Shown here: positions 12,051 through 38,885 of the stretch, piece after piece
How the letters are laid out: each line of letters opens with the position of its first letter
How positions within the stretch are numbered: the first letter of the stretch is position 1
Assembly: GCA_964035545.1 (NCBI GenBank)
Contig: OZ037767.1
Span: 15,380,998 to 15,444,997, forward strand
Length of the DNA stretch: 64,000 bases
Source: Bugula neritina
Taxonomy: Eukaryota > Animalia > Bryozoa
Direction of reading: 5' to 3'
Program-made: the position numbers and the translations under genes
Notes under the pieces: generated by a model
What the model saw: only the letters and a program-made list of their open reading frames with translations
Told to the model about the DNA's origin: nothing
Databases searched by the model: none

Positions 12051-12355
12051 TGTGGTGGTTCGTGGAACTACCAGCAGCACAACATGTAGGGTCGCGTAAT
12101 TGACCCGGAACAATGGATAGCCAATTAGCGTATTTGATAGTTAGCAGCAATTATAGTTTCCCGCTGCTAACTCAGTCGAAGTTAGAGTGCTGAATAGATT
12201 AGATGTGTAAATTGTCAGATGTATTGTATCGTTTTATAATGTATTATTGTGTGTAAAATATATACTCGTTCACTCGACTTATTCTGGTGCAGTTCTATAG
12301 CAAGTAATTAGACTCTCTGGATAGCATATCAACCCTAAATCTGAAAAACATAATA
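12051..12355 (+). repeat. 5' LTR of Ty3/gypsy element
   Basis: Starts TGT and matches 19248-19552; the terminal CA reads TA. Confidence 0.95.
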
Positions 12356-12356
12356 G

Positions 12357-12374
12357 TGGTGGCAGCGGTGGGAT
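12357..12374 (+). promoter_or_regulatory. Primer binding site, tRNA-Leu
   Basis: TGGTGGCAGCGGTGGGAT is the reverse complement of ATCCCACCGCTGCCACCA, the 3' end of eukaryotic tRNA-Leu(AAG/TAG). Confidence 0.85.
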
Positions 12375-12386
12375 AGTGCATCCAAG

Positions 12387-13340
12387 ATGGAGACTGAAAA
12401 TGCTGGAACTCAACCACCGGCAATAGAAGGTGAGCGTAGAGACAATGCTGTAGAGACAATGCCTGTTAACCATGTAGTAGAAGAGCGAAGGGTTCCGCGA
12501 GAACTAACTGAGGACCGCTACCGGTTAAAGGCGCCCACCTTCACGGGTGAAGAGGAGGTGGAACAATTTATCCAAGAGTTTAGCGACGTAATGGACATCG
12601 CCCAGTGGCCCCCTAGGGTGGCCTTGCTGAAGCTTAGAATGGCATTGATGGACAAAGCCAAGCCTTATGGGCTGGGCGTAGACATTGATAATATCTTTGC
12701 TTCTCTGCGGGCCCGCTTCGGCCTCTCTGCTACAGATGCCAGGGCCCGATTGCAGAGGTTGCGGCGTGATCCCCGCACCCCACTGCGGGAGCACGCCGCC
12801 GCGGTCATGAAGCTGGCACAGATCGCGTACAGCGACTTGCCCCCAGTCAACCGCGAGAGGTATACCCTCGACGCTTTCATAGCATCTGTCGACGATCTGG
12901 GTCTCCACCACCAGTTTCTAGCTAGGGGAGTCACCACCGTTGAAGATGCTTTGACTGAGGGGGAAGCTTACCTCCTAGCTAATCAAATGCATAAAAGTCG
13001 CGGGAGCTCCCGTCAAGTGGAGATAGACCGCGCGGACACGGCCGCGGGAGAAGGGGAGGAAACCCCCGCCGCGGCTGCCGTGTCCCAGTTGGCGACGGCA
13101 TCGAAAGTCACTCAACTGACAGACATGCTGGCCAAACTGATAGCAACACTGACACCCCAAACCCCAGTGAGTACCGCCACTGAGCCCTTGCGGCCACCGG
13201 CGCCGCCACAGGGAGAAACAGTCAGTTTCTGCTGGGAGTGCGGAAATCAAGGACATTTCCGCTGGTACTGTCCCTTCCTAAATCAGGGGTTAAACTACCG
13301 CGGCCCGCAGATGTTCCCACCTCCTGCGGGCCGACGATGA
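12387..13340 (+). CDS. gag: Gag (capsid + CCHC zinc knuckle)
   Basis: 317-aa ORF directly after the PBS; PTFTGEEEVEQFI capsid-like motif and CWECGNQGHFRWYC knuckle. Confidence 0.92.
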   Translation: METENAGTQPPAIEGERRDNAVETMPVNHVVEERRVPRELTEDRYRLKAPTFTGEEEVEQFIQEFSDVMDIAQWPPRVALLKLRMALMDKAKPYGLGVDIDNIFASLRARFGLSATDARARLQRLRRDPRTPLREHAAAVMKLAQIAYSDLPPVNRERYTLDAFIASVDDLGLHHQFLARGVTTVEDALTEGEAYLLANQMHKSRGSSRQVEIDRADTAAGEGEETPAAAAVSQLATASKVTQLTDMLAKLIATLTPQTPVSTATEPLRPPAPPQGETVSFCWECGNQGHFRWYCPFLNQGLNYRGPQMFPPPAGRR

Positions 13341-16300
13341 AACCTCTAGGGAAGAAGAAACGCAGGTCACCCAGACGGGTACCGCGTACTGGTAACCAAC
13401 CGTGGCAACAGCCACGGCGGACCAGCAAGGGGCTCCGCTCCGCCGCTACCTTTTCCATGCCCCTTCATAACAGATTCGCAGGGCTACAAGCCCAAGAATC
13501 TGGATGGGAGCCCACAAAGGTAGCCGGGAATCTAGCCTCGGCACCCCCGAGGCCTACTTACCACCGCCCCAAGAGACCTCCTTCGCGACCCAAAGCGAGG
13601 GAGGTACTCCCTGCGAGAGTAAGGCCCGAAGAGAGAGTTCAGGTGCAGCCCCATGGGAACAGCTATTTCTTGCCCGGTAAACTAGAAGGCAAAGCTGTTA
13701 CATTCCTCATTGATTCGGGCTGTACCACGAACCTCTTGAGCCGCCAACTCTTCGACACCCTCAGTGCTAGGGTCAGGGGTGAGATGGAGTCATACGAAGG
13801 GGAGTACGGCACCCTAGCAGACGGGTCGTGCCTTCCCTTCTATGGTATAATTGAGCTGACGGGACAAGTCCGTGATCAAACGATCCAAGAGACGTTCATC
13901 GTCAGTCAGCTCAAGGAGGACGCCATCCTCGGGATGCCATTCCTAAAACGGCACGGATGTCACATAGATTTTAGCAAATCTGCGATGATGATGTCCGGGC
14001 GAGAACTCGCCTGCGTCGACAAGTTCGGCCGCCCTTTAGTGGGAGGTGTGCAAGTGGTACGCAACCGTACCATACCAGGCCGCTCCCGGGCTACCATTCA
14101 CTGCAGGGTGAATAATAGCCGGATCTCTGGACTCGGGGTAGTTGAAGGCGCGCACGAAAAGATCCAACTTGCCAGCAGTCTGAATCAGCTGACTGAGCAA
14201 GGGGAGATCTTAGTGCAGTGCGTCAACCCCTTTACCGAGTCTATCAAGCTTCCGGCTGGGTCGATGCTGGGCCGTTTTCACTCTGTTCAGGAGGAAGACG
14301 TAGGCCCGTCGCTGGGTGATGCGACAGAGGCACTTCCTCAGTGCCCTACTCAAGGGCGAGGGGCAGTCCCAACACATCTCCGGGAGTTATATGACACAGC
14401 CTGTAGCGGCTGCGCGAGTAACAAAGAACGCCAAGTTATGGCCAACTTACTACGCGACTACGGTGATGTGTTCAGCAGCGGAGAGCATGACGTGGGACTG
14501 ACTGGAATTGTCAGACACGAAATACCGCTGACTGCAGGGACAGTCACTGTCCGGCAGCCCACACGCAGGCTGAGACCGGAGAAAGAGAAGGAGGTTAGCC
14601 GACAAGTACGGGATCTTCTGGACCGGGGACTGATAGAGCCCGCCCATAGTGCGTGGAGCTCGCCAGTTGTACTGGTCCGGAAGAAAGACGGCAGTTGGCG
14701 GTTCTGTGTGGATTACCGCAAACTCAATAGCGTAACCATACAGGGCGCCTACCCTCTACCTCGTATTGACGAGTCATTGGACGCCCTAGCCGGCAGCAAG
14801 TACTTCAGTACGTTAGACTTGCTAAGCGGCTATTGGCAAGTTCCTTTGAGTCCCGACGCCCAGGAGAAAGCGGCGTTTATCACACGGGACGGTTTGTGAA
14901 AGTGGAAGGTGCTGCCTTTCGGGTTGACCTCCGCCCCAGCCACCTTCCAGAGGCTAATGGAGCAAGTCCTCAGCGGGCTCCATTGGAAGACACTGCTGAT
15001 CTACCTCGATGATGTCATCATGATCTCCCCAGACTTCGAGACACATGTCAGTCGTCTGCAGGAAGTCTTTGAGAGACTCCGAGGTGCCGGTCTTAAGCTC
15101 AAACCTTCTAAGTGCGCTCTATTGCAGCCAGAGTTTGAGTACCTGGGGCACGTTGTCGGTCGAAACGGCGTGGCAACGGATCCCGAGAAGGTACGGGCAA
15201 TAGAAGACTGGGTCACCCCCCAAGACTTGACCGGACTCCGGGCTTTCTTGGGGCTGGTAGGGTATTACAGACAATACATACCAGACTTTGCGGGCATAGC
15301 ACAGCCGTTAAACCGGCTCACCGCAAAGGGAGTGACGTGGCAGTGGACCCCAGTCGAACAAGGAGCGTTCGACCGCCTCAAGGGCAGCCTACTAACGGCG
15401 CCCATCTTGGCCTACCCAGACCCCACTCTGGAGTACATCCTCGACACGGACGCCAGTGACCAAAATGTTGGCGCTGTGCTGTCACAAGTGCAGGAAGGCC
15501 GAGAAGTAGTAGTAGCCTACTACAGCAAGTCTCTCTCACCCACTGAACGAAACTACTGCACTACCCGCAAGGAGCTGCTGGCAGTAATCAAGTCAGTGAA
15601 GCATTTCAGACCATACCTATATGGCAGGAAGTTCCGGCTGCGTACGGATCATGCCTCGCTGATCTGGTTGTGCAAGAGAGCAGAGCCCTCTAGTCAGGTC
15701 GCCCGGTGGCTCGAAATCCTAGCTGAATTCTCATACCGGATCGAACCTCGACCGGGCAAGAGACACAGCAATGCGGATGGGTTGAGGCGCCGACCTGACG
15801 GAGGTTGCAAACAGTGTCTCAACATCGAGAGGAGGGATGGAGGTCCCCCGCGATGCGAGTTGGAGACGCTGGCTCACCACGGAGCACCGTTCGACTGGGA
15901 CCAGGGTCAACTCAGGCAGGGAGTTGATGAGTCCCCGGTGGGTGTACAAAACCTCCGCGCCAACCCTGTACTGGCCGGTAATTTTCGAGAGCTGAAGAAG
16001 CTCCAAGAAGAGCTGCCTGGAGTCGTGGCAGACATATACCGGGCCAAAAGGGAAGGGCGACAACCCAGCGAAGAACGCATACGACAGGGATGCGCCGAGT
16101 TCCGGCTATACTGTCAGCGTTGGGACTCGCTGCGGATCGGGCAGGATGGGTTACTAACCATCTCTCTAGCCGCCAGCGGCAGACACCCGGAGAGGAAGAG
16201 GGTAGTCTGCCCCAAGGTCATCCGCCGTGAGTTGATTTGGGATACTCACAAACAGGCCCACGCAGGGGTCAAGAGAGCGATGTCCAAATTACGACTCCGG

Positions 16301-17860
16301 TGGTATTGGCCACAAATGGAGCGTGACGTCCGACTCAGAGTCAAACAGTGTGAGATCTGCCAGGCCAGTAAGCATAGCCGCCCCCCTGGTGAAGCAGGAC
16401 GGCGGAGGCTATATGCTGGTAGGCCCTGGCAAGTAGTCGCTGTAGACCTGGTCGGACCCATGCCCCTGACCCCCAGAGGCAATAATTGGATCCTAGTACT
16501 AACCGACCACTTTACTAGGTGGGCGGATGCTCTGGCTATCCCAGATGCATCAGCCCCAACAGTGGCCAGGGCACTAGACCAACATGTATTCTGTTATTTT
16601 GAGCTCCCCGAACAGATACACTCTGATCAAGGCGCTCAATTCCAGTCTCAACTGATGAGCGACCTTTGCCACCTCTGGGGGGTAAATCAGAGCAGGACCA
16701 CCCCCTACCACCCTCAAGGTAACGGGGTGGTGGAGCGCAACAACCGGATGCTAGGTGATGCGCTCCGGAGTCTCCTCCTTGGACGAGGTCAAGAGGAATG
16801 GGATACGGTGTTGCCGCAAGTCATGCGTGCATACCGTAGCACCCCACACACCAGTACTGGTGAGACCCCAAACCTCTTGATGCTCGGGAGAGAGACTCGT
16901 GTCCCTGACCATCTCACCTACCACGTTCCAGAGCAAGACAACTCGGTTCACGAGTATGCCAGTGAACTAGTGGAACGGATGAAGGCCGCACACGATATAC
17001 TGCGAAAACAGCAGTGGAAGGTGCGGCACGAAGATTCCGATGAACCACCTCTCTATCAAACGGGAGATAAGGTGTGGATGGTCAATTACCGTAGGCGTCG
17101 CGGACAGGCTGATAAACTAAAGCCTAAGTTCGTAGGACCCTACGTGATCGTCGAGGCTATGCCCAATCATACGTACAAGATTGAGCGCTCAGGACAGGTG
17201 TCTATCCAGAATGAGTCTCGCTTGAAACCGTATTGGGCTAGCCTCGACGCAGTGGGAGAAGCCCCCCCGTTGTTGGAGCCCAGGAGGCAGACAACAACGC
17301 GCGGGCGACGGCGGCATGGACCTGAATACGAAGTGGTCATACCGCGAGAAGAAAACTTGGTGAGAGAGGAACGGCAGCTTTTGCCAACGGAAGCGTGTCC
17401 GCCACCGCCAAGTCTAATTCCATCACTTCCAGAAACCGAACCGGTTCCGGAAGTGCAAACCCCCACGGAGGGAGGGGCTCCGTCCGGAGAACAAGAAGAG
17501 GTGACCGCTAACGGTGAAGTAGAGACGCCATTAGAGGCCCCTACTAACGAACCGGCAAGCGTGTCACCCCCCCTAGAAAGGGGACAGCGTACGAGGCAAC
17601 CCCCCGCATACTTGAAGGACTTCATATGCGACTGCGTTAAAAGCGGCGTGTATGAAAGTCTAGGGGAAAACCGTACGAGAAAAGTATCGAGCAAATGTGG
17701 GAGTTGTCAACACCACGGAAATATCAACTTTTGTATCGGCGGAAATAGAAACAAAATTCATCCGCCGGGTGCACAAAGTCTTAATCACGCACCCCAACCA
17801 CGTTGCTCGATCTTTTCATACGCTGATGCAGTCAGGAGTAGACGTGTTTCCAAGCAGTAG
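13238..17860 (+). pseudogene. pol: Pol polyprotein (protease, RT, RNase H, integrase) with one in-frame stop
   Basis: Motifs LIDSGC, WRFCVDYRKLN, YLDD, LDTDAS, HHCC, D-D-E (VAVDL, HSDQG, VVERNN) and GPY. ORFs 13238-14899 and 14909-17860 share a frame, separated by TGA 14897-14899 in GL*KWKVLPFGL (likely TGG>TGA). Confidence 0.93.
13289..13333 (+). promoter_or_regulatory. -1 programmed ribosomal frameshift signal
   Basis: G_TTA_AAC in gag phase (13289-13295), 5-nt spacer, perfect 10-bp stem CGGCCCGCAG (13301-13310) / CTGCGGGCCG (13324-13333); pol is in the -1 frame. Confidence 0.8.
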
Positions 17861-18186
17861 TTCAAACCATTTCACACATTCAGTATGTCTTACGACAACA
17901 GATCGTGGGGTGAGTTAACTATATCTTAATGTGAAACTAGATTGCATCGCTCAGCTCCGACTCACTGAGTCAATCGAGCTGGAGATAGGTTAGTGAAATA
18001 CCGTAGTAAGAACTCAGTTTGACTTAGAGATTTTTTATAATCTCATTGCAATACGTGTTCTATCTGACTATTCGCTACCATAAATCTCTACGAGGTAACT
18101 GAATTAGGAGTTGCCAAGCTATTCAAGCTGACAACACGGCAGTGCACTGTATTAACACTGTCGAAACTTTTTCAGATTACACTTGA

Positions 18187-18957
18187 CCCGCTATAACCAG
18201 GGTACGGGATAGAGCACTTCCCGCTCCGCATCCGGAGGAGTATGCTAGTGGTGACCGGCCCGAGCCACTACGCCGCCGTTGGCGGTGGGTGTCTCCAGAA
18301 ACAGAGGAAGAAATAGAAACGGCCTGGGGGTCCAGAGGACGGACGAGATGCCAGATTTGTGGTGAAGAATGTGCCTCTCACCGCTCCTTGAAGCTACATG
18401 TCAATGCTCATCTCCTACTCACATTCTGCCCCTGCGGACACAATGATGTTTACCCCTACCCCGTCACCAGACATCGAGTGACGGGCTGTTTCTCTGGAGA
18501 AAACTACGTGGTCGACGCTAAGCTCTACCCGGAGTTCTTCACCCTTATACGACCCCTAGTGAAGAAGGCAATGCTGTTAGCCGTCCTGACCTCGGGGTTC
18601 CAACGTGTATTAGACAACGCCAGACAACAATCCCCGTTGGTATCTGATCGCCCTCAGACTACGTACACCCCCGAAGAGTTTGCCTATCCAGAAGAAGGAG
18701 AGATCTCCCCTACCCCGACGAAGAGACGAACCAGGTCCCCCAGTCCCCCTTTGCGCCGCAGACGGACACCGTCCCCAGACCCAGTCCGCCTGGCCACAGT
18801 AGAGGAACGCCTCCTGCGATTACAAGAAGAATTCACCCAGTTGGCACCGGATCTACTTAATACTAGAACAGGGCTCTTCCAACTCAAGGGATCCGTATGC
18901 CGGATGAAACGGAAACTGCGTACATGCCAAGCCAAGCACCAGCGTGCCCAACAATGA
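18187..18957 (+). CDS. Retrotransposon ORF3: C2H2-like zinc finger, RS/SP-rich tract and coiled coil (not env-like)
   Basis: Frame open 18187-18957 with no ATG in its 5' part; CQICGEECASHRSLKLHVNAH, CPCGH...H...C, KRRTRSPSPPLRRRRTPSP and a heptad-like C-terminus. Confidence 0.6.
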   Translation, partial: PAITRVRDRALPAPHPEEYASGDRPEPLRRRWRWVSPETEEEIETAWGSRGRTRCQICGEECASHRSLKLHVNAHLLLTFCPCGHNDVYPYPVTRHRVTGCFSGENYVVDAKLYPEFFTLIRPLVKKAMLLAVLTSGFQRVLDNARQQSPLVSDRPQTTYTPEEFAYPEEGEISPTPTKRRTRSPSPPLRRRRTPSPDPVRLATVEERLLRLQEEFTQLAPDLLNTRTGLFQLKGSVCRMKRKLRTCQAKHQRAQQ

Positions 18958-19247
18958 CTCTAGTTCTGCTGTCGGAATAATCCGCAACTTCGTCCTCTTG
19001 GGGGAACCCAGGACATCGTGCAAATGCTTGACTGCTCGACAGACTATTCCTTGTCCAATACCACAGCTAGCCGGTATTCCTCGTCTATAGCTGGTCAATT
19101 GTAGGTAACGGACTGTTATAATGACTCTGTCTATTATTATGTATCTTCCTGTGTGTTATGTATTATTTTGGTCTACTGATGTATGCGGTTAATAATGAAT
19201 GTTTTTTTATATATATCAGAGAGAAGGCTTTCTGCTGGTGGGGGCGG

Positions 19248-19552
19248 TGTGGTGCTTCGTGGAACTACCAGCAGCACAACATGTAGGGTCGCGTAATTGA
19301 CCCGGAACAACGGATAGCCAATTAGCGTATTTGATAGTTAGCAGCAATTATAGTTTCCCGCTGCTAACTCAGTCGAAGTTAGAGTGCTGAATAGATTAGA
19401 TGTGTAAATTGTCAGATGTATTGTATCGTTTTATAATGTATTATTGTGTGTAAAATATATACTCGTTCACTCGACTTATCCGGGTGCAGTTCTATAGCAA
19501 GTAATTAGACTCTCTGGATAGCATATCAACCCTAAATCTGAAAAACATAACA
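19248..19552 (+). repeat. 3' LTR of Ty3/gypsy element
   Basis: TGT...ACA, preceded by the PPT and followed by the ATAT TSD. Confidence 0.95.
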
Positions 19553-22202
19553 ATATCTTTTATTGAACATCCAACTGATTCTACTAAAATAATAGCAGCT
19601 ACATCAAAACAACTTGTAGAGATCAATCATCATGGAGACTGTACAGTAGTAGCTGGTGTGCAGCTGCAAGGTTGTTTGCATACGCAAAACTCACTTTCAT
19701 TTGCTTCTATCAGCCATATTGTTTATGCTCACTTCACTGATCTGAATATACATCACTTCCTGTTTAAAAAGTCTGTCATCTTGGTGGCTGATGAAGGTGA
19801 CCATTACATTAAATTCTTTGAATTTCAACAGAAATCTTTGTTCTCTAATTTTCAAACCTACAAAATTGGCAATTGTGGACTTCCACAAGTATCCCCTCTG
19901 TTAGCTGGTAGGGTTCAACATTTCAACGAACCTCAAGCAATCAAGTTGAACAGCCCAAAACATCTTTCTCTGTACCATGACTCTGAGACTATCAGACTGG
20001 TTGTTAACTGTGTACTGACTGAAGTATACTCTGTTATTGTTAGTATCTATCCAACTCACACTGTAGCATATGAGTACAGTGGACACCCAGGGTATGTAAC
20101 TGATATGTTGAATTATTTTGATTTTCCAGTGATGAAATCACAAAGATTTAGCAGTGTGGAGGGCAAAAGTGATTTAGCAAAAGTAGAATTGCATATTGAG
20201 GATAGTTTTGGCACATTACTTGGGATTTATTTTTATTTTTGTGAGTCAACTATTAGTTCAGAAGTTCCCAGACTGTTAGTTGATTTGCCAACAATATTAA
20301 TGAGTGGTAAAACTCAATATTTGATTTACAATCATACTAGTCAAGAGCTGTTCATACGGAATTTACAAATTTTACATCTTCCTCTGGAAGCAGAGTCTAA
20401 ACTGAGTCAGTATACTGTAGCACGTGATTCTCTCATACTCTACAGTCAAAGCCTGAAAACATTTTATTTCACAAAGAAATATTCTCAATATCAGAGAGTT
20501 AGTGAGAGTTAGTGTAGTCAGTCTATTATACAAAAGTTACAGGTGAATGGAGCTGAATCTTGTGCTTATGTCTGCTTTACATATGGCGACCTTTGTGTTT
20601 ACTTTTCATTTAATAGTGTAGACAACTTCTGTAATATTCATAATGAGGTCAGCAATACTAGTTTCATTACTGCTCCAGGTTTCTACTGTTACACATCTTT
20701 AAATTATATATTTTAAATGTTTAAACAATTTTTTGGCTCTTTTAACAACGATATTATATCCCAATTTTAATTTAGTAAGTTATCACACAAATAATAACTT
20801 ATTGAATGGGTTTTCTGACAAAGAATAATAACTTATTGATTGAGTTTTCTGACAAAGAACGTAATTTTTTTCTGATGCTGGTAACATTTACAATTATATT
20901 TATGTTTACAGTGTAATATCTATGTTTCGTACAATATTTTAGTTATGTTGACATTTATGCTATAGCTGTTGTGAATTCAATAAACACTAATCTCGGTTCT
21001 ATAATGTGTTTTATCTCAATATATAACTAGATATACCATTTTAATCAAAAAAAAAGCCATAATCAAAAAAGGAGAACAATGATCAGTTAAGGTAATTGAA
21101 AGGGCACAACAGAAACCTATATTATATGAAATGGGCAAAAGAGGACAACTCTAGATATTCATAATATCCCAGTGATAATTTCACTTATTGACTGCAAATG
21201 CATATTTTTTGTCTGATTAGCCAATTAAAAATCAGTGACTATGTTTTCAACAGCCATGCTTGTGTTTTACTAAATCACCCAATCAAATAATTGCTAAGGT
21301 AGCATTCGACTCTCTTAACTAACTTATTACATTATTTCGTCAGTTTAAAACTTCAAAGAAGCATCCAATATGTTATAAAGGATAATGAGTGCTTCTAGTA
21401 ACATGTGACAGCATGAACTCTGATTGGTATCGCTGACTGTATTATTACTAAGTGAAAAAACATTGAGGTAACGAAACAGTAAAAATTTTTTCACTCTGCT
21501 TTATTTAACATATTATATACTTATTTATATATATTTAGATGCTGAGTAGTGAATTTATCACTGGAACTCATGCATGCAAGATAACAGAAATATGTATGAG
21601 GCAAAATTTAAAAATATGATGAAGTAATTTAGCGAAGCAGTAACAAAATTAGTATAATATAATAATTGATATATATAGTAAGAAATATTGTTATTGTGGG
21701 CTATAATAAACTATTTTAGAATTAAACTAATGCATGTAATATATTCATAAATCAATCAAGCTTTACATTATAACATATAACAGCCTAATTGTTACACATA
21801 ATATTTCTATTCGTTATATAATTCAAGGTGCTTTCTTCGGTAATTTCATGGCAAAAACGAACACTATATAATAATGCTATATGCTGTATCAACTGTTATA
21901 AAATGATAATAAAAACTGATAATATATAATATAAAGTAATATAAATGCATAATCAAACAACTCAGGTAAAAACTAAACAATAATAAAGTCTAAAAAGTTT
22001 ATCAAAATACAGCACAAAGCTATTACAAAGTATATTTCCTTGCTATATCATGATAGTACATGCATGGCTGCATGAATAGAATCTATTACCAGTTATATAA
22101 TTTACTTGATCATAACGTCTTAAAGCTAATAGTATATGCAGCTTATAACCAGTTAGAATGTCAACGTAAGTGAGGTAAAGACATTTACTGTTGAAGAGCT
22201 AT

Positions 22203-25200
22203 TCACTTATTTTTCTTCATTCCAAAAATGGTAAGCTTTCCATCATTTGCTGCTTCTACCACTTTCGACCAATCAGTAGCTTCCTCACATAGTTTACCAA
22301 GTGCAGACAAGCCTCCTTTCTTTGCACTGTCCATCCATTGTCCAATTATCTGAAATTTATATTATGAGGGAAATTTCAATGAAAATGCATTATATATAAT
22401 ACCAATGTTTATATATTATTATAAAACAAATATAAGAGTGTATAATACTATCCCATATTTTGAGGCTTCAATAAAACATGTAGTGTTTAGGCAACTGGTA
22501 CTCAAAGCTTTTTATGCTACAGTCATCAAAAAATTGGCAAAAGAAACAATTTTTTTCTGCGTTTTCCTATATTTTGTACTATATGTTTTATAAACATGTA
22601 ATACCTGATACACTTTAATTACAATACATAAACAGTGTATAATTGTGCTATAGCTCATGATTATAGTAACACAGTTTTATAATATCTTTCAATACAATAA
22701 CTTGTTTATACAAGAGCCCTGTGTTTTTATAACAGCACAGCTTTTCATGTTTTGTTTATATACTACTTCAAAGAACTCAAAATGAAAACGTGCTTAAACA
22801 AAATTCTTGCAAGTGTGAATGCAATCAATGCTTAAACAAAAGTGTTGATTTTGCTTTTATTATAAAACTAGGATATATAAGTTAAAAGTCTACCTCATCT
22901 AGTTTATCTTTATCCAGTACATTCAGGTAGTAAATGTATCTGAATCTGTCAATAGTTTTACGACATTTCCCGGTTGGTTTAAGAGCATCATGAATAGATT
23001 TGGCTCATTTACTTGTCAGTTGGTTATGTACATATTCCATCAACTGTATAGCCTGTTCAGGTGTTTGTACTGCAAGGAACACAGGATAAAATATTTAAAT
23101 ATTAAGCTATGAGAAGATATGAGTATTAGTATTATATCTCTGCTATAGGAAATATTACTGAGTGTAATATAACAGCTGGTCATATATATCAAGCTCTATA
23201 GTTGCCTCTTCATCTTATATATAGTAAGAGTTGTCTTATTTTATTATATATGGTGAGAGTTGTCTTATCTTATTATATATAGTAAGAGTTGTCTTATCTT
23301 ATTATGTATAGTAGGAGTTGTCTTATCTTATTATATATAGTAAGAGTTGTCTTACCATATTGAAAACTTGTTGCAGCATTAGGAGCTGACAAATCTTGGC
23401 CAGCCTGCTTGTCACTGACTCTTTCTACAAAATACACAAAAGTCATGCAAGCTATCGTAATGGGTAGCCTCAAGATATAGGAAACTTTATAAACACGTGT
23501 TGAATTAAAATGTTAACAGAATGTTACAAACTGAAACACATTTTAATTCATTATTACTGTAATTTATTTCAACAAACCTGTAACTAGTGTTTCTTGGTTC
23601 TCAACAAATATTGAGAATGGAACATCCACTAATCCAAGTCTGAGAGAGTCAGAGCATCTTGATTTATCTAAAATGATACAAAGCTTTCAAACAAAGGATT
23701 ACCTACTGAAGATCCTCATTTATTTACTTTTACACGTTATGAAACAATTTTCAGTAATGTAATAAGCTGAATAATGTGGTGATATTGAGATTTAGCCACA
23801 TATATTATACCATGCAGTATTTGCAGTGTTGGGTTTACCCAGTAGTCCTCTCTAATGTAATGGTAGCAGCCTGCTTGCAAGTAGGAGGTCTCGGGTTCGA
23901 ATCCCACTGAGGGCAAAAGTTTTATAAACGATTTTCACCTTTTTTGTAATATAGTAGCACTTCGAGCGAGTTGAGATGCCAAAGAAGCAATTGAAGACTG
24001 AAGGTGTAGAGGAAGGGCCAGTGGAGTTCTTAAGAACAAAGTGGGAAGTAGCGCTTTAGTTTACTCAGGGCCCTCTGTGGTGTATAGTGGTTGCCCGCCT
24101 GCTTGCAAGCTGGAGTTCTCGGGTTGAATCTCAGTGGGAGCAAAACTATTTTACAGTATTTCAATTTTTAATTAAGTTTCTAGGCTAGTTTATTAGCAGA
24201 TTATAATAAAATATTTTCAATTTAAAAATATATAATCTAACTATATTTCTTTTAATATGAAGCTATTTATTTTTATCTTCTTGCTATACAATCACACACG
24301 TATGCACATTACCTTCATCAACTACACGACACAATACCCCAGTTTCACAGTCTTCCTTTATGCAACGTCTGAGATCTCCGATAGTCATGTGATCTTCAAA
24401 TGAGTAGACTGTGTTTTCTCCCTGAACTTTTACAGTTACTTTACAGTTTTTCACTTTACCTGCATAATTATATAACTTGTCACATGATCACAAAGTCAAA
24501 TTTAATCCTAGCGTAATTACACATCAACAATGTAACAAATAGGTATGTTTAGAGGCACACATGCAAGTAACTTACTCTTGAATGGCCCATCTGATCTGGT
24601 AGGAAGTGAAACTGCTTGGTGTACCGATACAGTAGCAGGTATATCTTGATGTGGTACTGCAACCACTGCATCTATTAGAGAAGGAACCTCAGTTGACTGC
24701 GCCATGTTCTCCATCGTGTTTTCTGCTGAGACATGTTCATGTGGTGCTGTAACACTTGAGAAAGCTTGGTGTGGTGCCACAGTGTTTAACTGACTTAGTT
24801 GTGATGATCCTGTATCTGACACTGGGTCATGTGAAAGAGTAGTAGTTTGGTTTAGTGCTTCAAAAGTAAAGGTAATACAAATAATATAGCTATATTAAAT
24901 GTTGATGATATTAAATCAGAATTTCTTTCATTCAGTAAAAAGCCTCAATATATGGCAGTCAATTAGCATTTGTATATCAGCTCAATGGTCATAATTATAC
25001 ATATTTTGCAAATTTCGACATTTAAAACAATTAGAGTTTTAGTGAACTACAAGAATCAGCTTATAGGACTAAAAGACTACCAAATTGTATAACTTACATG
25101 CAGTCCTTTGATATTTAGTTGAGGGTAAAATTGTCATAGCTGTTTCTGCAGGCCTTTTGTTGCACGAAACCTTGTCGGTTTGCTTTTTTAAGTCAAAAAC

Positions 25201-28200
25201 TTGAATAAACGAATTGCTTTCTTGTGCCGGGTCAATAACAGGAGGGTATGCACTACTTTTAAATTGCAGATAAAATTCGTGTTCATTTTCCATTTGCCTG
25301 CTTCTAAAACCTCCTTCATGTTTTTGTACTTCTGATGACACATTGTTAGGAAAGTTGGACATTGGAGATGAGGGTAATTTGAATCGAGTGTCTGCTTCTC
25401 TATGGATGTTGCTATCATCATTCACATGTGAAAGAATTGTAGAGATCATGTTGTTGGAAGTTGGAGGAATGAATGGAGACCAGTCCTCTGAATGGTTGAA
25501 AGATGGAGCATTCAATTGAGGAGATGGAGATGGTAAACTGACTGTGGGATTCTCTGGTCTAGGAAACCACTGTGGTGTTGACGGAGGGGGTACACTTGGC
25601 ATAGAAAAAGACCCATTAGTATTGTTTAGTCGCTGGGCCTCCATGTGTGATGGAGGGAGTTGGGACCAAGATGGCTGAAGATGAGTCAACTGTGGCGCTG
25701 TTTGTAGATACAATGGTTGTTTTAGATGTGTTGGTTGCCAGTGCTGTGAATTTATTGGTTGGTGTGGAGACAAAGGATGGTGTGTCTGTTCTTTCCAGGG
25801 ATCTGTCTCTAAAGAAATGTTAAATATGTAAAATAAAATTTCATGTAAACATGTCATTCAGCTTGTAAATGGGCAGCTATAGTTAGAATATTATGACTTC
25901 AATTGATTGATTATTATAGATAAACAGTAACATGCTACATACAGTTAAATTTTCATTTGTATAGTTTAAATATTTATATATTCTGTTTTTCAAATTCATG
26001 AATTTTACAATTGCTTATAGTATTTATGAAGGAATATTAATTTTACTCTTTCACATCACTTATGATATGCAACATTTGAATTAAACTGGCAGTGCTAAAT
26101 TACACATAGTCATTAGAATTTTGTTAAAACAATGAAATAGCAACTGTATTCAATGTGCTTATGGTTAACAATTGATTTATCTTGTGTTATCTGTGATAAA
26201 GCATAATAAGTAATTTCCTGCCTTTATCCAATTATGCTTTATATTCATTAAAAACAATATTTTAGCTTATTGCTACTTGAATCATAAAAGGAAAATACCT
26301 TGAAGTAAAATAGCCTGTTTAAAAATAAGTAATTCTACCTGGAACTTGACTTGTTGCATCATCTCTTTGTTCTGTAGAGGTTGTCTTCCGTCCAAATATT
26401 TCATTATTTACACCAACACCTAAAGGTATTCTTTCTGCATGGTTTGATATATTGAAATGTTTTAGCTGCTGCTCTGCTGTCAGCTGACTCATCAAAAGAG
26501 TGAGAATCTCTGTTTGGTTAGTCTTAGCTGCTTCCTGTATCACTGTCTTACCATCTCTATTCTGTATCTTGAGCAGTTCTACCTTCTGTTCTACTGATAT
26601 ACCATCTAGTAGACATTTGATGGTGTCAGTATGACCTCTTTCTGCTGCAATGTATATAGCTGTCTCATGCTTCCAGTCCTGTATCTTGAGTAGCTCTACC
26701 TTCTGTTCTACTGATACATCATCTAGTAGACATTTGATGATGTCATTATGACCTCCGCATGCTGCACTGTGTATAGCTGTCTCATCCTCCCAGTCCTGTA
26801 TCTTGAGTAGGTCTACCTTCTGTTCTACTGATACACCATCTAGTAGACATTTGATGGTGTCAGTATGACCTCCGCATGCTGCATTGTGTATAGCTGTATC
26901 ATTTACATTGTCCTGTATCTTGAGTAGCTTTACCTTCTGTTCTACTGATACACCATCTAGTAGACATTTGATGGTGTCAGTATGTCCTTCGAATGCTGCA
27001 CAGTGTATAGCATAAGACTCAGTTGTCTTGAGTAGCTCTACCTTCTGTTCTACTGATAAACCATCTAGTAGATATTCGATGATGTCAGTATGACCTCTTT
27101 CTGCTGCACTGTGTATAGCTGTATCATCTCCACCATTCTGTATCTTGAGTAGGTCTACCTTCTGTTCTACTGATACACCATCTAGTAGACATTTGATGGT
27201 GTCAGTATCTCCTCTCCATGCTGCACAGTGTATAGCATAAGACTCAGTTGTCTTGAGTAGCTCTACCTTCTGTTCTACTGATATACCATCTAGTAGACAT
27301 TTGATGATGTCAGTATGACCTCCGTATGCTGCACTCTGTATAGCTGTCTCATCTCCACCATTCTGTATCTTGAGTAGGTCTACCTTCTGTTCTACTGATA
27401 CACCATCTAGTAGACATTTGATGGTGTCAGTATACCCTTTCTCAGCTGCACTGTGTATAGCTGTCTCATCCTTGCAGTTCTGTATCTTGAGTAGCTCTAC
27501 CTTCTGTTCTACTGATACACCATCTAGCAGACATTTGATGATGTCAGTATGACCTCTGCATGCTGCACTGTGTATAGCTGTCTCATCTCCACCATTCTGT
27601 ATCTTGAGTAGGTCTACCTTCTGTTCTACTGATACACCATCTAGTAGACATTTGATGATGTCATTATGACCTCCGCATGCTGCACTGTGTATAGCTGTCT
27701 CATCATCCCAGTCCTGTATCTTGAGTAGGTCTACCTTCTGTTCTACTGATACACCATCTAGCAGACATTTGATGATGTCAGTATGACCTCTGCATGCTGC
27801 ACTGTGTATAGCTGTCTTATCTCCACCATTCTGTATCTTGAGTAGGTCTACCTTCTGTTCTACTGATACACCATCTAGTAGACATTTGATGGTGTCAGTA
27901 TGTCCTTCGAATGCTGCACAGTGTATAGCATAAGACTCAGTTGTCTTGAGTAGCTCTACCTTCTGTTCTACTGATAAACCATCTAGTAGATATTCGATGA
28001 TGTCAGTATGACCTCTTTCTGCTGCACTGTGTATAGCTGTATCATCTCCACCATTCTGTATCTTGAGTAGGTCTACCTTCTGTTCTACTGATACACCATC
28101 TAGTAGACATTTGATGGTGTCAGTATGTCCTTCGAATGCTGCACAGTGTATAGCATAAGACTCAGTTGTCTTGAGTAGCTCTACCTTCTGTTCTACTGAT

Positions 28201-28760
28201 ATACCATCTAGTAGACATTTGATGATGTCAGTATGACCTCCGCATGCTGCACTCTGTATAGCTGTCTCATCTCCACCATTCTGTATCTTGAGTAGGTCTA
28301 CCTTCTGTTCTACTGATACACCATCTAGTAGACATTTGATGGTGTCAGTATACCCTTTCTCAGCTGCACTGTGTATAGCTGTCTCATCCTTGCAGTTCTG
28401 TATCTTGAGTAGCTCTACCTTCTGTTCTACTGACACACCATCTAGTAGACATTTGATAGTGTCAGTATGACCTCTTTCTGCTGCAATGTGTATAGCTGTA
28501 TCATCTCCATTCTGTATCTTTAGCAGCTCTACCTTCTGTTCTACGGATACACCATCTAGTAGACATTTGATGATGTCAGTATGACCTCTCTTTGCTGCAC
28601 AGTGTATAGCATAAGACTCCTCACATAACAGTCTATATCTCTCTTCTAATGATATGAAAGGAAGACACTTCTTCAGCTTAGTCAGAATATTTCCCTCTTC
28701 ATATCTATATATAATACTAGTGAGTAATTGAGTAAACTTTAGCACTTCATTCTGATTCAT
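22203..28760 (-). CDS. Ankyrin-array protein with P/Q/S-rich linker, ubiquitin-like segment and CCDC106-like C-terminus, copy 1 (18 repeats + cap)
   Basis: Exons 28760-26339, 25808(or 25802)-25098, about 24858-24576, 24459-24313, 23667-23578, 23424-23356, 23069-22894 and 22349-22203. All have GT-AG junctions, keep frame and are conserved with copy 2; ends DGKLTIFGMKKNK*. Confidence 0.8.
23210..23354. repeat. 29-bp intronic minisatellite (about 5 units; about 3 units in copy 2 at 57425-57510)
   Basis: ATCTTATTATATATAGTAAGAGTTGTCTT units abutting the exon-6 donor. Confidence 0.85.
23845..24142 (+). repeat. Two degenerate tRNA-like units (23845-23915, 24070-24142) within a copy-1-specific intronic insertion
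   Basis: Both read ...TGGT...GCCTGCTTGCAAG..GGAG.TCTCGGGTT(C)GAATC.CA..G.G.GCAAAA, with a B box and an Ala(TGC)-like arm whose loop is only 6 nt. This intron is about 645 bp here and about 105 bp in copy 2. Confidence 0.65.
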
Positions 28761-30244
28761 TTTAACTGACCTTTTAGTTTTAGTAAGAATTCTCCATCTT
28801 TAGCAGCTCTTCAAATAGACTAATATGCTAGACTAGAAAACTCCACGATACACAATGACAATGTCTATTCTCAGACTATATATAATAATAATACTAAATT
28901 ATAACTTATTTTTTCATTTTAAGCTCTAAACTTTCACACGTGTATAACAGTAGTCGTTAACTTTCTGTAAATTACTAACCAGAATCTTCTCAATATGGCG
29001 TGCCTACTTGTGTAGCGCTTATCTATCAACTATAACTATAACTAGCCTGTACAGTATGCAGGTCCGTAGTACAGGGAATACACGAGGAAATAGATGGGAA
29101 ATTCCATTCACTCCCATTACTCATATTATATACTATGATTTTCGGCCTGTCAACAAACAATTGCGTTAGGTAACGACTAGTCAAAGTGGGGAATACTTAA
29201 AGAAACTATTATAATTATTGATAGGATAACACAACTCATATTATCAACCACCAAGCTGTGGTTGTAGACAGTCATGCTATACAAAATTATAACATGCCTA
29301 CATAAGCTGCTCATAGTATAATATTTGGAGTAATATAAACTTTCAACTTCTATATGAACTTCCGTACCATGAATGTAATTCTACATGAAATTAGGACTAA
29401 AATATGTTATAAAAGTCCGATTAAAGTCAGCCATTGTCTTGGCGCTAAATTAAAAGCAATAATTAATGGAAGAGTTAGAATTTTTACAGCCCTATGTTAT
29501 TTGTAACATTGTGATATTTATGCTTTAGACTATTATATAATATATGATGGAATGTTAATCAGTAATTTAATTTTGCAAATGCAAGCAAACAAGTATCACG
29601 TGTAAGAGCAAAGTTTTTAAACATAGTTTTGCGGTGGCTTATATTATGTTAGCTTCATTCAAAATATCTGGCAAAAGTTTACCATGAGCTACATGACATT
29701 TTTCTAATGATCATCATAATTTTAACTCAATATATATTTATAAAATAATTGCTTCGAATAAAAATGAAAACTTCCATATGAATAAAACACTTGCGTGACC
29801 AATATAAAAGATGAAAATAGGTTAAAAACCAAAGAGATTGATCAAATATGTAAAAGCTTGAAATAATTTTTCATCAAAATAAGAGAATATTTGAAACAGC
29901 TAATATATAATTTGTTGTATTAACAATCACATTAATGTGTATTTAAACACTAAAAAAAAATGCATTATAAGAAGCTTCATGTAAAAACAAAAACAAAAGT
30001 TTTAATGGTTTTATATGAGTAATTTCCCAACAGTATTATAAATCATATAATTTTCTTGCTATAATAACGTAATATTCTGAGTCTGTATAGATAGACAGTG
30101 TATGCATGCGCATTATGAACCTATCACCATATATTTAGTTCCTTAAAGCATTAGCTTAATGATAATTGCACAAGCCATTATGTGTTAAACTACTTAATAC
30201 AATTAAAAATCTGTACTTTTGAAATGAGCACCTCATGTGTTGTT

Positions 30245-36191: not shown

Positions 36192-38675
36192 AAGAGTTTG
36201 AAATTGAATAAAAACGGTTTTTATTCTGCCCCATCTTTCGTTCTTCTATAGCACAAAAATACATTTAAATTTGTTATTATTGATGTTTTTATTATGCCTT
36301 GCAAAATTTTTTACATAGAGCTGGGTCAAGAGCAACCAATTTTTAGTTAAACATATAAACACATTACGTAGCAAATACTAGTCATAAACTAGTAAATGTA
36401 TAGCATCTCTAACTTTAGGATTTACTTTTTTTAATTATATATAGTCAAAGTTCGGCCAAAACCTAGATATATCTTGATATAATAAGTAATATCTATAATA
36501 ATAATAAGTAATTATTATAATATAATATAATAAGTCATATATATATATGACTTGATAAAATTGCGATATAATGTTATTATAGTGTTGATTTACTTAGAAG
36601 TAGATAGATTATTCAGTTTAGCAATATGGTTCAGCTATTTATTTTAATGGAGACACAGGAACAAAAGAGAGGGATTATGGGTAAAAGGGAAACATATTAC
36701 AAAATGATGCAATATAGAATCTATAAGTATGTAAAGAACATAACTCTAAAGTTGTAATATAAGTGACTGATTTTCACTACGTATTCAATTTATAGTACAT
36801 ATAATATTTAAGAATAAATAATATAATTAAATGATAATATTTTAATGTGTCGACTTGAACTCACTTGTATATTTACTTTAATAGGACAGCCCTATGCTGC
36901 GCTAGAGATGGGTGACGAGTGCTATTGTGGTCTCACATACGACAAGTATGGATCCAGCGATAAGTGCAGTAAAAAATGCTCTGGGAACTCTCAGCAGACC
37001 TGTGGAGGGACTTGGGCCCTCAGTGTGTACAGCACGTTCAGTCGTGAGTATAACAGAAAATTCAGGAGACTAGTGTGACCTCCCCTCCGTGTAGCCCCAA
37101 CCATATTAAACGGTTTGTGACAAGATTCAATGCTATGTCAAGGTTGAAAGTAATAAATGAGCATTGGAATGAAAATTTTATGAAGTTTAGGTCAATACCA
37201 ATAAAGACTGCATTGAAAATCCAAATAACTAGCAGAAATAGCAGATTCTTTGCAAGGAAGAAATGCAGTGCATATATGTGATACCTGCTAAACCTGACAC
37301 CCTTGTAGATGCATGTCCCTCTTTTGTAGAATATAAGTTACTTGTGGCCATAGTATAATGTGCAGGTATAAGGGAACATTACAATATTTTCAATTTCTCA
37401 ACAATGATATCTAAACAACACCTTTATGTTCTTATATATTGAACAGGTGATGTTAAGGTGAAGAAACCTATGAGTCAGAAAGAGCTAAGAGATTTGTTTG
37501 TTACCAGTTCTGTAGATGCTACCAGAATACTACCCGATATCAAGTCATTCATGTTATATCCTTGGTTGGAGAACAGGCTGGCAGCCGTCACGTCTCAACA
37601 GCTAGTGAGAATCAGTCCGACTGGGGATTGCGAAGTGTTGGCTGGTGTGCAGCTAACCGAATGCTCGATAAAGCCTAACTCCTTTACTTTTAACAGCATC
37701 AGTCACTTCATTTCAGTGGATTTCTCGCAGCTGCGAGATTCCTCGGAGCTCTTCAGTCAGAAAGTGTTTCTGGTGGCAGATCGTTTTGACCATTGCGTGA
37801 AGTTGGTTGACCCGAGTAACCTAGAAGATGCTAACCCTATTGTGATTGGTCAATGTAGCACGCCCGGGAGATTAGAGAATGTTTTTAGCAGATCTCTAAA
37901 CGATATTAGACTGACGAGCCCAATTCATCTTTCAGTTGTAATCGCGTCTGATGTCATCAGAATAATCATCAGCTGTAAGAAGGACGAACGCGTCTACCCA
38001 GTTATTTTGAATGTGTTTACCGACGATTATTATTTCTATGATTACTATTTAGAGGAGTCCCGGGGTTTCCTTTCAGATGTTGTTAACTCTTACTATTATC
38101 CACAAATACATTTACTCCAACAAACCCAAAATAATCAAAGTGGTTGGAACTGTTCTTTAAACCTGTTAACCGATGACTTTAACGTTACATCCAGCTATAG
38201 ATGTGCGGCCAAGTTAAATGCAAATATACCTGAAATGCTTAAAAGTTGGCCGCTTTATATAAACAATGGCAAATTAAAATATTTCAAGTATTCTTGGACT
38301 AATAATGTATTAAATACCGTAAATGTAAAAATCAACGGTTTAGCTCGAGAACTTACAAACTCACTTGACTTGTTCGACATCGCCCCTGATTCTCAGAAAG
38401 TCATCCTGTACAGTGAGAGTCAAAAGATGTTCTACTTCACTGAGCCTAGTACTAGAGTCCGATTTACTTTGCAGGCTGATACTACGTGCAATGAGCAATG
38501 GATAAAAATGAAGACAAATGGTAGCTTGGAGTCGTGTGCACATTTCTGCTACAAACAAGTGGATGATAAGTGCACATCATTTACTTTTGATGATAACAAG
38601 GACTGCTTTTTGCACAGCAGTGAAGTGCTGAAAGCAGAAAGTCATAGAAGCTGTTATATTGTTCATCAGGAGTGA
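35942..38675 (+). CDS. Secreted WSC + NHL-like + PAN/apple protein, divergent paralog D (intact)
   Basis: Exons 35942-36116, 36885-37043 and 37447-38675, with the same phase-1 structure. Motifs FLVADRFDHCVKL, LTSPIHLS and ESCAHFC...CTSFTF...CFLH. Confidence 0.85.
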
Positions 38676-38885
38676 TTTAATTGACTTAAAGTTTCATGAT
38701 ATGTATGCAAAGATGTCTGTAAAAGCTATGCTAGTAGAAAGTTTACTAGTGGGACAATTATTATTCCCCCTTTGAACATTTTACCATTTAGCAAGAAAAT
38801 AATAGTGATATAATTTCTATTACTTTTCTTTAAATTTTGAAGTGAAAATATTACAACAATTAAAAACTTATTAGGAAGAAAGGAC

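Follow-up and report, generated by a model that had tools for sequence, protein, structure and literature searches.

Do the few variable codons of a long ankyrin array in the bryozoan Bugula neritina mark a binding surface that selection has diversified, or do they record the chance history of a recently expanded repeat? The array is encoded on the minus strand of contig OZ037767.1 (C3 of the assembly), at positions 26339-28760 of the 64,000-nucleotide window that was analyzed, and the coordinates given below for the array gene and its neighbors are positions in that window. A preliminary description, made from the letters alone, had likened it to a natural library of designed ankyrin repeat proteins (DARPins), with an invariant scaffold and hypervariable binding-surface codons. 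Our analysis makes it rather likely that the array belongs to a bryozoan family of intracellular proteins that join a variable binder to a constant tail and whose germline set has been diversified on the binding face. Binding-face positions evolve faster than synonymous sites while the scaffold is constrained.

In the mechanism that we propose, exon 1 encodes a capped ankyrin solenoid whose unit is a 39-residue, three-helix variant of the repeat. Recent in-frame unequal crossing-over within this single exon, by which blocks of repeats are copied, would keep the scaffold nearly identical, and gene conversion within and between paralogues probably adds to its homogenization. Diversifying selection would drive the repeats apart at the hairpin, at the residue that follows AIH and at the two that follow AA, so that the patch on offer would differ from repeat to repeat and the long binding groove from paralogue to paralogue. 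A disordered P/Q/S-rich linker would tether the array to a beta-grasp and a CCDC106-like helical domain, a conserved tail that we take to be the common output or anchoring part. The targets of the array may be proteins that change fast, whether those of a parasite, a virus or a transposon or the animal's own rapidly evolving ones, and the tail may act in the nucleus or in a ubiquitin-like pathway.

Repeat Units and Binding Face

The exon 1 protein matched the Pfam families Ank_2 (E = 4.3e-112) and Ank (E = 1.5e-103), and both the significant profile hidden Markov model (HMM) match and the solenoid fold place it in the ankyrin repeat superfamily (Pfam clan CL0465). Tandem Repeats Finder returned a period of 117 with 17.9 copies and a higher-order period of 225 with 9 copies. 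Cutting the protein at the LLDG motif gave a 44-aa N-terminal cap, 18 similar repeats, a divergent 19th repeat and a unique end. The repeats were spaced by 39 aa (12 times), 36 aa (4 times) and 38 aa (twice); lengths of 39 or 36 aa, longer than 33, had been reported before, and the 38-aa spacing is added here. The canonical 33-residue, two-helix unit was not found, as the units measure 36-39 aa and their extra residues SVEQKVELL form a third helix in every repeat.

Nucleotide identity between repeats averaged 0.95 in the TD.IKCLLDGVSVEQKV.LLK stretch. It dropped to 0.63 for three codons, the one that follows AIH and the two that follow AA, and to 0.67 for the five codons of the hairpin. These values agree with the preliminary claim that scaffold DNA is nearly identical between repeats and that change is concentrated after AIH, after AA and in the hairpin. 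Of the variants listed there, F and Y after AIH, the pairs EE, YR and WG, and the hairpin DSEDK belong to the paralogue at 60305-61603 and not to this array. Mean pairwise identity was 0.82 over 31 fixed columns and 0.89 over the scaffold only (0.90 for nucleotides), against a reference criterion, for repeats of the kind found in fungal NOD-like receptors, of at least 85% over at least 100 aa. Among 73 repeats, columns 5, 8 and 9 held 40 distinct residue triplets; columns 5 and 9 used a single codon per amino acid with an invariant third base.

Residues 1-355, modeled with AlphaFold2 on an alignment of nine paralogues, gave a predicted local distance difference test (pLDDT) score of 91.8 and a predicted template modeling (pTM) score of 0.86. 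In the model each repeat forms a helix at AIH.AA.., a second at TD.IKCLL and the third at SVEQKVELL (six extra residues). The top Foldseek matches were espin, ankyrin-1/B and DARPins, with probability 1.0 and template modeling (TM) scores of 0.5-0.6. Alignment to ankyrin-1 by HMMER set the register, which assigns the hairpin to positions 1-5, including DARPin x2, x3 and x5, the residue that follows AIH to position 10 and the pair that follows AA to x13/x14. Positions 10, 13 and 14 are i, i+3 and i+4 of helix 1 and form a single helical face beside the hairpin. The variable residues thus appear to line the canonical ankyrin binding face. Hypervariability was seen at x2, x3, x5, x13 and x14, also at position 10 and hairpin position 1, and less so at hairpin position 4. 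The DARPin library design of Binz and Plückthun reportedly randomizes x2, x3, x5, x13, x14 and x33. The register supports the earlier assignment of the variable sites to the ankyrin binding surface (x2, x3, x5, x13, x14, position 10 and parts of the hairpin). Their equation with the sites randomized in DARPins holds at x2, x3, x5, x13 and x14 but not at x33, and position 10 varies in addition.

Selection on the Variable Codons

Selection was tested family-wide over 11 paralogues and about 110 repeats, with those of the cluster at 17.3 Mb included. The test set was fixed beforehand as the six DARPin-randomized positions x2, x3, x5, x13, x14 and x33, here called the a priori positions. Entropy was concentrated at these six positions in the array gene (permutation p = 1e-4), in the close family (4e-5) and in the 17.3-Mb cluster (2e-3). 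Parsimony counts on a FastTree tree of 73 repeats gave nonsynonymous rates of 2.5-4.6 times the global synonymous rate at columns 5, 8, 9, 35, 36, 37 and 39 (p from 8e-4 to 3e-14), and most scaffold columns fell below 0.7. Taking the 73- and 108-repeat sets together, the same seven columns ranged from 1.9 to 4.6 times (p from 3e-3 to 4e-17).

In 39 phylogenetically independent nearest pairs, the ratio of pN at the a priori positions to pS was 2.5-3.9. Because pairing by scaffold similarity lowers pS, this test was redone with cross-validation, in which pairs were matched on half of the scaffold columns and pS was measured on the other half, over 40 splits. The cross-validated pN/pS at a priori codons averaged 2.38 (range 1.59-3.62) and exceeded 1 in 40 of 40 splits, compared with 0.43 in the scaffold. 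A maximum likelihood (ML) codon test (GY94+F1X4, 79 distinct repeats, fixed topology) gave a dN/dS ratio (omega) of 8.46 for the a priori partition, small at six codons, 0.72 for the other 33 and 1.13 overall. The likelihood ratio test against omega = 1 at the six codons gave 2dlnL = 43 (p = 5e-11). The preliminary description had held that evenly spread variation, with dN/dS below 1 at the variable sites, would argue against it; the ratio at those sites exceeded 1 in both the ML and the cross-validated test, and no such even spread was seen.

Origin of the Array Diversity

Comparison of the coding DNA with itself revealed a lag of 918 nt, equal to eight repeats. In the core of this block, 4 of 195 codons differ (six nucleotides), all of them nonsynonymously and at columns 8, 8, 9 and 11. 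One repeat pair is identical except for a contiguous 4-nt replacement, TCGA to GGAG (FE to WR), and one further base, and the codon strings WR and GD occur separately in paralogues. The 4-nt patch fits short-tract conversion, with recurrent mutation as the alternative. Recent block duplications in five genes, the array gene among them, showed 9 synonymous and 37 nonsynonymous codon differences, and nine variable columns (23% of all columns) hold 21 of these 37. The proposal that the module was diversified by repeat shuffling gains support from the block duplications in five genes, from the range of 5-22 repeats per paralogue and from the mosaic patch with variants present in other copies.

Homogenization by itself has to be considered as an explanation. 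The array could be a structural or scaffolding protein under concerted evolution, homogenized for mechanical or spacer reasons as in long ankyrin springs, with variable codons that are old repeat-type markers kept by chance. The nearest scaffold neighbor indeed lies in the same gene for 51 of 73 repeats, and repeat types such as KTTES recur across genes. The exon-1 caps flanking the arrays of the two window copies have a dS of about 0.11, compared with 0.19-0.34 in the tail exons, which is consistent with homogenization of exon 1. However, homogenizing tracts would also erase neutral differences lying 10-80 nt from the scaffold codons, yet the codons at that distance are the most diverse, as the 40 triplets at columns 5, 8 and 9 illustrate. 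The variable sites also coincide with the a priori binding positions (p ~1e-4), and omega is significantly above 1. We regard a purely structural role as improbable and favor a copied scaffold on which selection has diversified the binding face.

Gene Structure and Conserved Tail

The window is AT-rich, with 26-37% GC around the array gene, and its top-scoring protein matches were B. neritina proteins annotated as hypothetical. The open reading frame (ORF) at 26319-28760 on the minus strand encodes 813 aa, with its ATG at 28760 and its stop at 26319. This stop is not the end of the gene, as a splice donor CCAG/GTAGA lies at 26339/26338, and a pyrimidine-rich acceptor AG at 25810-25809 restores the frame into a P/Q/S-rich ORF. 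Position 26339, where the array had been said to start, is the last exon base before the donor, and the interval is exactly the first coding exon. The term single-exon therefore suits the array and not the gene, which has about seven further coding exons downstream. Exons were searched as separate pieces, and the annotated paralogue P0001 (EB796_019488, 818 aa) stood in for the whole architecture. In tblastn, the P0001 tail matched all tail exons, in order, at 25719-22206, and did so again for the second window copy. A contig of public run X1 is unspliced across 25969-26344, as expected of DNA. The features are as follows.

26339-28760, minus strand: first coding exon with the entire ankyrin array; ATG at 28760-28758, donor GT at 26338-26337, MNQNEVLKF start common to all paralogues
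28629-28760, minus strand: N-terminal cap, aa 1-44, predicted three helices (3-18, 22-35, 38-47), no signal peptide; 91% identical to the window paralogue
26565-28628, minus strand: the 18 internally conserved repeats of the array (aa 45-732), 36, 38 or 39 aa long and each predicted to have three helices
27849-28433, minus strand: core of copy A of the block duplication (918 nt, 8 repeats), codons 110-304
26931-27515, minus strand: core of copy B of the same block duplication (918 nt, 8 repeats), codons 416-610
26339-26564, minus strand: 19th repeat, divergent and forming the C-terminal cap, with the unique end of exon 1
25809-26338, minus strand: intron 1, GT...AG
25312-25808, minus strand: exon 2, P/Q/S-rich, probably a disordered linker; 3' end approximate, frame carried from exon 1 (cca g/ag aca)
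~24741-24559 and ~24466-24314, minus strand: exons 3 and 4, S/T-rich segment and start of the beta-grasp; bounds from tblastn
~23665-23579 and ~23425-23357, minus strand: exons 5 and 6, remaining beta-grasp and short linker; bounds approximate
22894-23070, minus strand: exon 7, conserved core of the C-terminal helical (CCDC106-like) domain
23005-23007, minus strand: in-frame TGA, AGA (Arg) in the window paralogue
22203-22352, minus strand: last coding exon, end of the C-terminal domain; protein 100% identical to the window paralogue
60305-61603, minus strand: array exon of the paralogue, 432 aa, 9 repeats, 72% identical; tail exons at 59296-56345, tandem segmental duplication

A model of the tail (pLDDT 79) shows a beta-grasp followed by a six-helix domain. 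The beta-grasp matched the N-terminal domain of the mitochondrial calcium uniporter (MCU) with Z 9.1 and many ubiquitin-like domains with Z ~4.5. Between the two window copies, the C-terminal domain has an omega of 0.00-0.02 at a dS of 0.19-0.34. Pfam found nothing on the individual tail exons nor on the P0001 tail. Exon 7 occurs in about 17 genomic copies, always beside arrays of the family, and B. neritina has about 17 family copies in a few tandem clusters.

No NACHT/NB-ARC, TIR or death domain was found by Pfam in exon 1, the tail pieces or full-length P0001. No signal peptide was seen at the N-terminus, a three-helix cap without a hydrophobic leader, and no transmembrane segment in P0001, as read by eye with no dedicated predictor run. 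The absence of these features, together with the beta-grasp and CCDC106-like tail, makes an animal-type surface allorecognition receptor unlikely and leaves room for an intracellular recognition role. The immune or allorecognition link suggested for the array is possible but unsupported.

Two further features of the noncoding and linker parts were observed. A KRPAETA motif in the linker, at about 25090-25170 (exon 2), is kept in both window copies, with KRPW in Watersipora, and looks like a nuclear-localization signal. In all three public runs, contigs pile up to very high depth over the tail intron at about 23800-24100 and show several skip joints with replaced letters, which points to a high-copy interspersed repeat; ARAGORN found no tRNA in this repeat.

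Paralogues and a Relative in Watersipora

A six-frame search of the genome found at least 12 close paralogues. Contig C3 carries eight at 15.17-15.89 Mb and a cluster at 17.27-17.34 Mb, and C2 carries one. Their repeats number 5 to 22, and they agree in their N-terminal cap and in which columns are fixed and which vary. The window itself contains two family copies in a tandem segmental duplication, about 34-43 kb apart, and the array gene at 26339-28760 is the largest and most recently expanded array. No description of this bryozoan ankyrin family was found in a literature search.

A word-based protein search with the tail returned P0001 itself only, and an exhaustive HMMER search was needed to find relatives in Watersipora. 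HMMER found the Watersipora subatra protein XP_067945400.1 (P0039, 1131 aa, annotated as 'ankyrin-2-like'), in which an ankyrin array of 39-aa units is followed by a low-complexity linker and the same tail, and two shorter Watersipora proteins with the tail only. XP_067945400.1 resembles the Bugula family in its long low-complexity linker, its beta-grasp, its C-terminal domain (tail 32% identical, E = 3e-15) and its variable columns. It differs in its homogenized scaffold, which reads TDIVKCILDSISSENKDKLLLQ where the Bugula scaffold reads TDTIKCLLDGVSVEQKVELLKIQ, and its repeats are 70% alike. That each genus has homogenized a scaffold of its own marks concerted evolution in the two lineages.

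A 39-aa period also occurs in ten other ankyrin clusters of B. neritina, with an identity at lag 39 of 0.23-0.57, compared with about 0.8 in the array family; the period is therefore older than the family. Long single-ORF arrays with a 39-aa period and an internal identity of 0.23-0.31 were also seen at loci L015-L030 (C3:4.48-4.51 Mb, C2:30.5 Mb, C8:7.5 Mb and C9:9.32-9.35 Mb), which makes the three-helix 39-aa unit a genome-wide trait of the superfamily. P0003 and P0004 (EB796_005942 and EB796_007494) represent another internally similar 39-aa ankyrin family of B. neritina, with the scaffold ILDSVPAADLYKLLSIQ. The long C-terminal part of P0003 carries a GDCGS motif that is reminiscent of chymotrypsin-fold or 3C-like proteases.

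Evidence against a Selected Binder and the Alternative of Neutral Decay

Several observations weigh against a family of diversified binders. For the binding face, the mapping of variable residues to the concave side follows from sequence register and helix periodicity, and DARPin position x33 is conserved (Q) in the array. For selection, the repeats recombine, so the tree-based tests (parsimony, ML) violate the single-tree assumption, and gene conversion, homogenization or selection on scaffold synonymous sites would inflate the dN/dS ratios. Within the array gene alone, NG86 gave only 1.06 for a priori codons against their own synonymous sites, although at variable codons this measure is uninformative because they contain only about three synonymous sites, inflated by pathway averaging; the scaffold synonymous rate was used instead. 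The non-a priori omega in the same comparison was 0.76. The overall ratio of nonsynonymous to synonymous differences between recent block duplicates (37:9) is near the neutral expectation, and only the location of the changes is non-random.

The identity of the tail adds to these points. The best ESM Atlas match of the helical domain was a CCDC106 cluster, weak at TM 0.48/0.47 over 113 residues, and the Pfam family CCDC106 (PF15794) matched two family members faintly (E 0.002-0.005). The best CCDC106 score, 17.2 bits for the Watersipora homologue P0037, lies below the gathering score of 30.2 bits, and the CCDC106 HMM had no match in P0001, the closest annotated paralogue of the array gene. The tail is without the coiled-coil N-terminal part of CCDC106, and membership in that family is not established. 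A match of the tail to the LEAFY DNA-binding domain (Z 7.3) lies within the background of helical folds, and a DNA-binding fold is not claimed.

The gene copy in the window also carries an in-frame TGA at 23005-23007, where the window paralogue has AGA (Arg) and P0001 has Arg. This stop occurs in 1 of about 17 genomic copies of exon 7, that of the array gene only. Apart from it, the two C-terminal-domain exons differ from the window paralogue by one amino acid, so the stop is very recent. The copy may be a null allele or a very young pseudogene, and a segregating null or an assembly error may also account for the TGA. The three public runs are silent on expression and on allelic repeat number, since they are contig sets without splice joints whose contigs break inside the array. 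One of them contains the locus (0.51 of sampled words), and the two others, from the same study, have only array-like pieces. P0036, considered as a transcript, proved to be a gene model on a genomic contig of an older draft assembly and provides no evidence of expression.

Taken at face value, the TGA in the array-gene copy only, the two within-gene NG86 values and the near-neutral balance of the block duplicates would suit neutral decay, in which the repeat expanded recently within a gene copy that is dying, and the variable codons mark surface positions that are free of constraint and on which no selection for diversity acts. Such decay predicts equal rates at binding positions, yet family-wide their nonsynonymous rate is 2.4-8 times the synonymous rate. 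The scaffold omega is 0.3-0.4, the tail omega is near zero, and the stop is very recent. The 813-aa array ORF is intact, and the same pattern recurs in 11 other paralogues and in Watersipora. Neutral decay is thus unlikely as the source of the pattern, and the diversified variable-binder family remains our preferred reading.

In the public runs X2 and X3, many array-like contigs with 92-99% likeness cover 26400-28770. Almost nothing of the unique intron and exon 2 at about 24590-26380 was present in them, except a short piece at about 25460-25580. These two runs may come from a sibling species or type with related arrays.

Comparison with Known Recognition Systems

Among known systems, the array family comes closest to fungal NOD-like receptors (NLRs) with internally conserved ANK/TPR/WD repeats, the Podospora HET-E/HET-D family. 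The repeats of these receptors are highly conserved internally, are polymorphic in number and are under positive selection at positions of the binding face (Dyrka et al. 2014, PMC4986451), and such repeats make up only 0.8% of metazoan ANK/TPR/WD repeats (PMC4986451). In both systems the repeats are about 82-89% identical, vary in number, are reshuffled within and between paralogues and are intracellular, with positive selection at a few positions per repeat, located on the ankyrin binding face in its inner helix and hairpin. The bryozoan family differs in being animal and in lacking NACHT/NB-ARC, and its array is N-terminal with the constant part C-terminal. Its unit is 39 aa long with a third helix, and its differences in repeat number were shown only between paralogues.

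This likeness raises the possibility of dedicated non-self recognition, in which an innate-immune or allorecognition receptor set of a colonial animal, similar to fungal NLRs, senses foreign or allogeneic proteins with the array and triggers a response with the tail. Internal repeat conservation, hypervariable binding-face sites, repeat-number variation and tandem clusters are the signature described for fungal NLR ANK/TPR/WD repeats (PMC4986451). B. neritina also has the other long 39-aa ankyrin families, including P0003 with its protease-like motif. The family, however, is without NACHT/NB-ARC, TIR, death, signal-peptide or transmembrane features, and its tail looks like a CCDC106-like or HTH-like helical domain, unlike known death or signaling domains. 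The literature search gave no paper tying the array family to immunity. We judge a dedicated non-self receptor set to be unlikely, about on a par with neutral decay, and return to the reading of a variable binder with a constant tail.

Similarity to DARPins is an analogy and not a relationship. The two share an ankyrin solenoid with caps at the N- and C-terminal ends, a framework that is fixed and consensus-like, and variation at x2, x3, x5, x13 and x14. The bryozoan array is natural and contains 19 repeats in place of 2-3, and its units, 36-39 aa long, include an extra helix. It keeps position 33 fixed and varies also at position 10 and at hairpin positions 1 and 4.

Vertebrate KRAB zinc-finger genes form tandem clusters by segmental duplication and encode their binding modules in one exon and a conserved effector in separate exons. 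Their contact residues are under positive selection on a fixed scaffold. The bryozoan genes appear similar in design, by analogy, but their modules are presumed to bind protein and not DNA, and their effector is unrelated.

Natural ankyrin arrays that resemble a binder library are well known from fungal NLRs but have hardly been documented in animals; by binder library we mean a fixed scaffold, binding-face residues under positive selection and a design that permits in-frame copying of repeats. The pattern reported here is strong and statistically clear, is common to the whole family and a second bryozoan genus, and is attached to an uncharacterized, strongly conserved tail. If the arrays bind fast-evolving targets, the family would add a new type to the recognition systems of animals, would supply three-helix ankyrin scaffolds that nature has already diversified, and would offer a tractable case of unequal crossing-over and selection building binding diversity. 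Otherwise it would still illustrate cleanly how concerted evolution and diversifying selection combine.

A wider and more tentative proposal, which we consider doubtful at present though less so than the alternatives weighed above, is that cheilostomes hold a germline, ankyrin-based intracellular recognition repertoire. Its single-exon arrays would be continually rebuilt by unequal crossing-over and short-tract conversion, selected for new binding faces and joined to interchangeable constant effectors (beta-grasp with a CCDC106-like, possibly DNA-binding domain here, and a protease elsewhere), with viruses, transposons, symbionts or allogeneic tissue as targets. If this repertoire exists, it would be an animal counterpart of the repeat diversification of fungal NLRs, or a protein-binding analogue of KRAB zinc-finger arrays.

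Other Elements in the Window

The window also contains mobile elements. A Gypsy-type long terminal repeat (LTR) retroelement at 12051-19547 has ORFs for gag, protease, reverse transcriptase, RNase H and integrase. Its GC content of 53-57%, within host DNA of 26-30% GC, is strikingly foreign to its surroundings. Its 300-nt end stretches, 7197 nt apart, are 99% identical, which indicates a recent insertion. Two 418-aa ORFs at 5687-6943 and 48330-49586 are 94% identical, have a Cys-rich end and no Pfam match, and are part of the large tandem segmental duplication that also carries the ankyrin genes. This ORF has a third copy, a degenerate one, at 19658-20512, just downstream of the LTR element. 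At 37458-40711, in the interval that separates the two copies of the ankyrin gene, a second retroelement fragment encodes a zinc-knuckle gag and an aspartyl protease.

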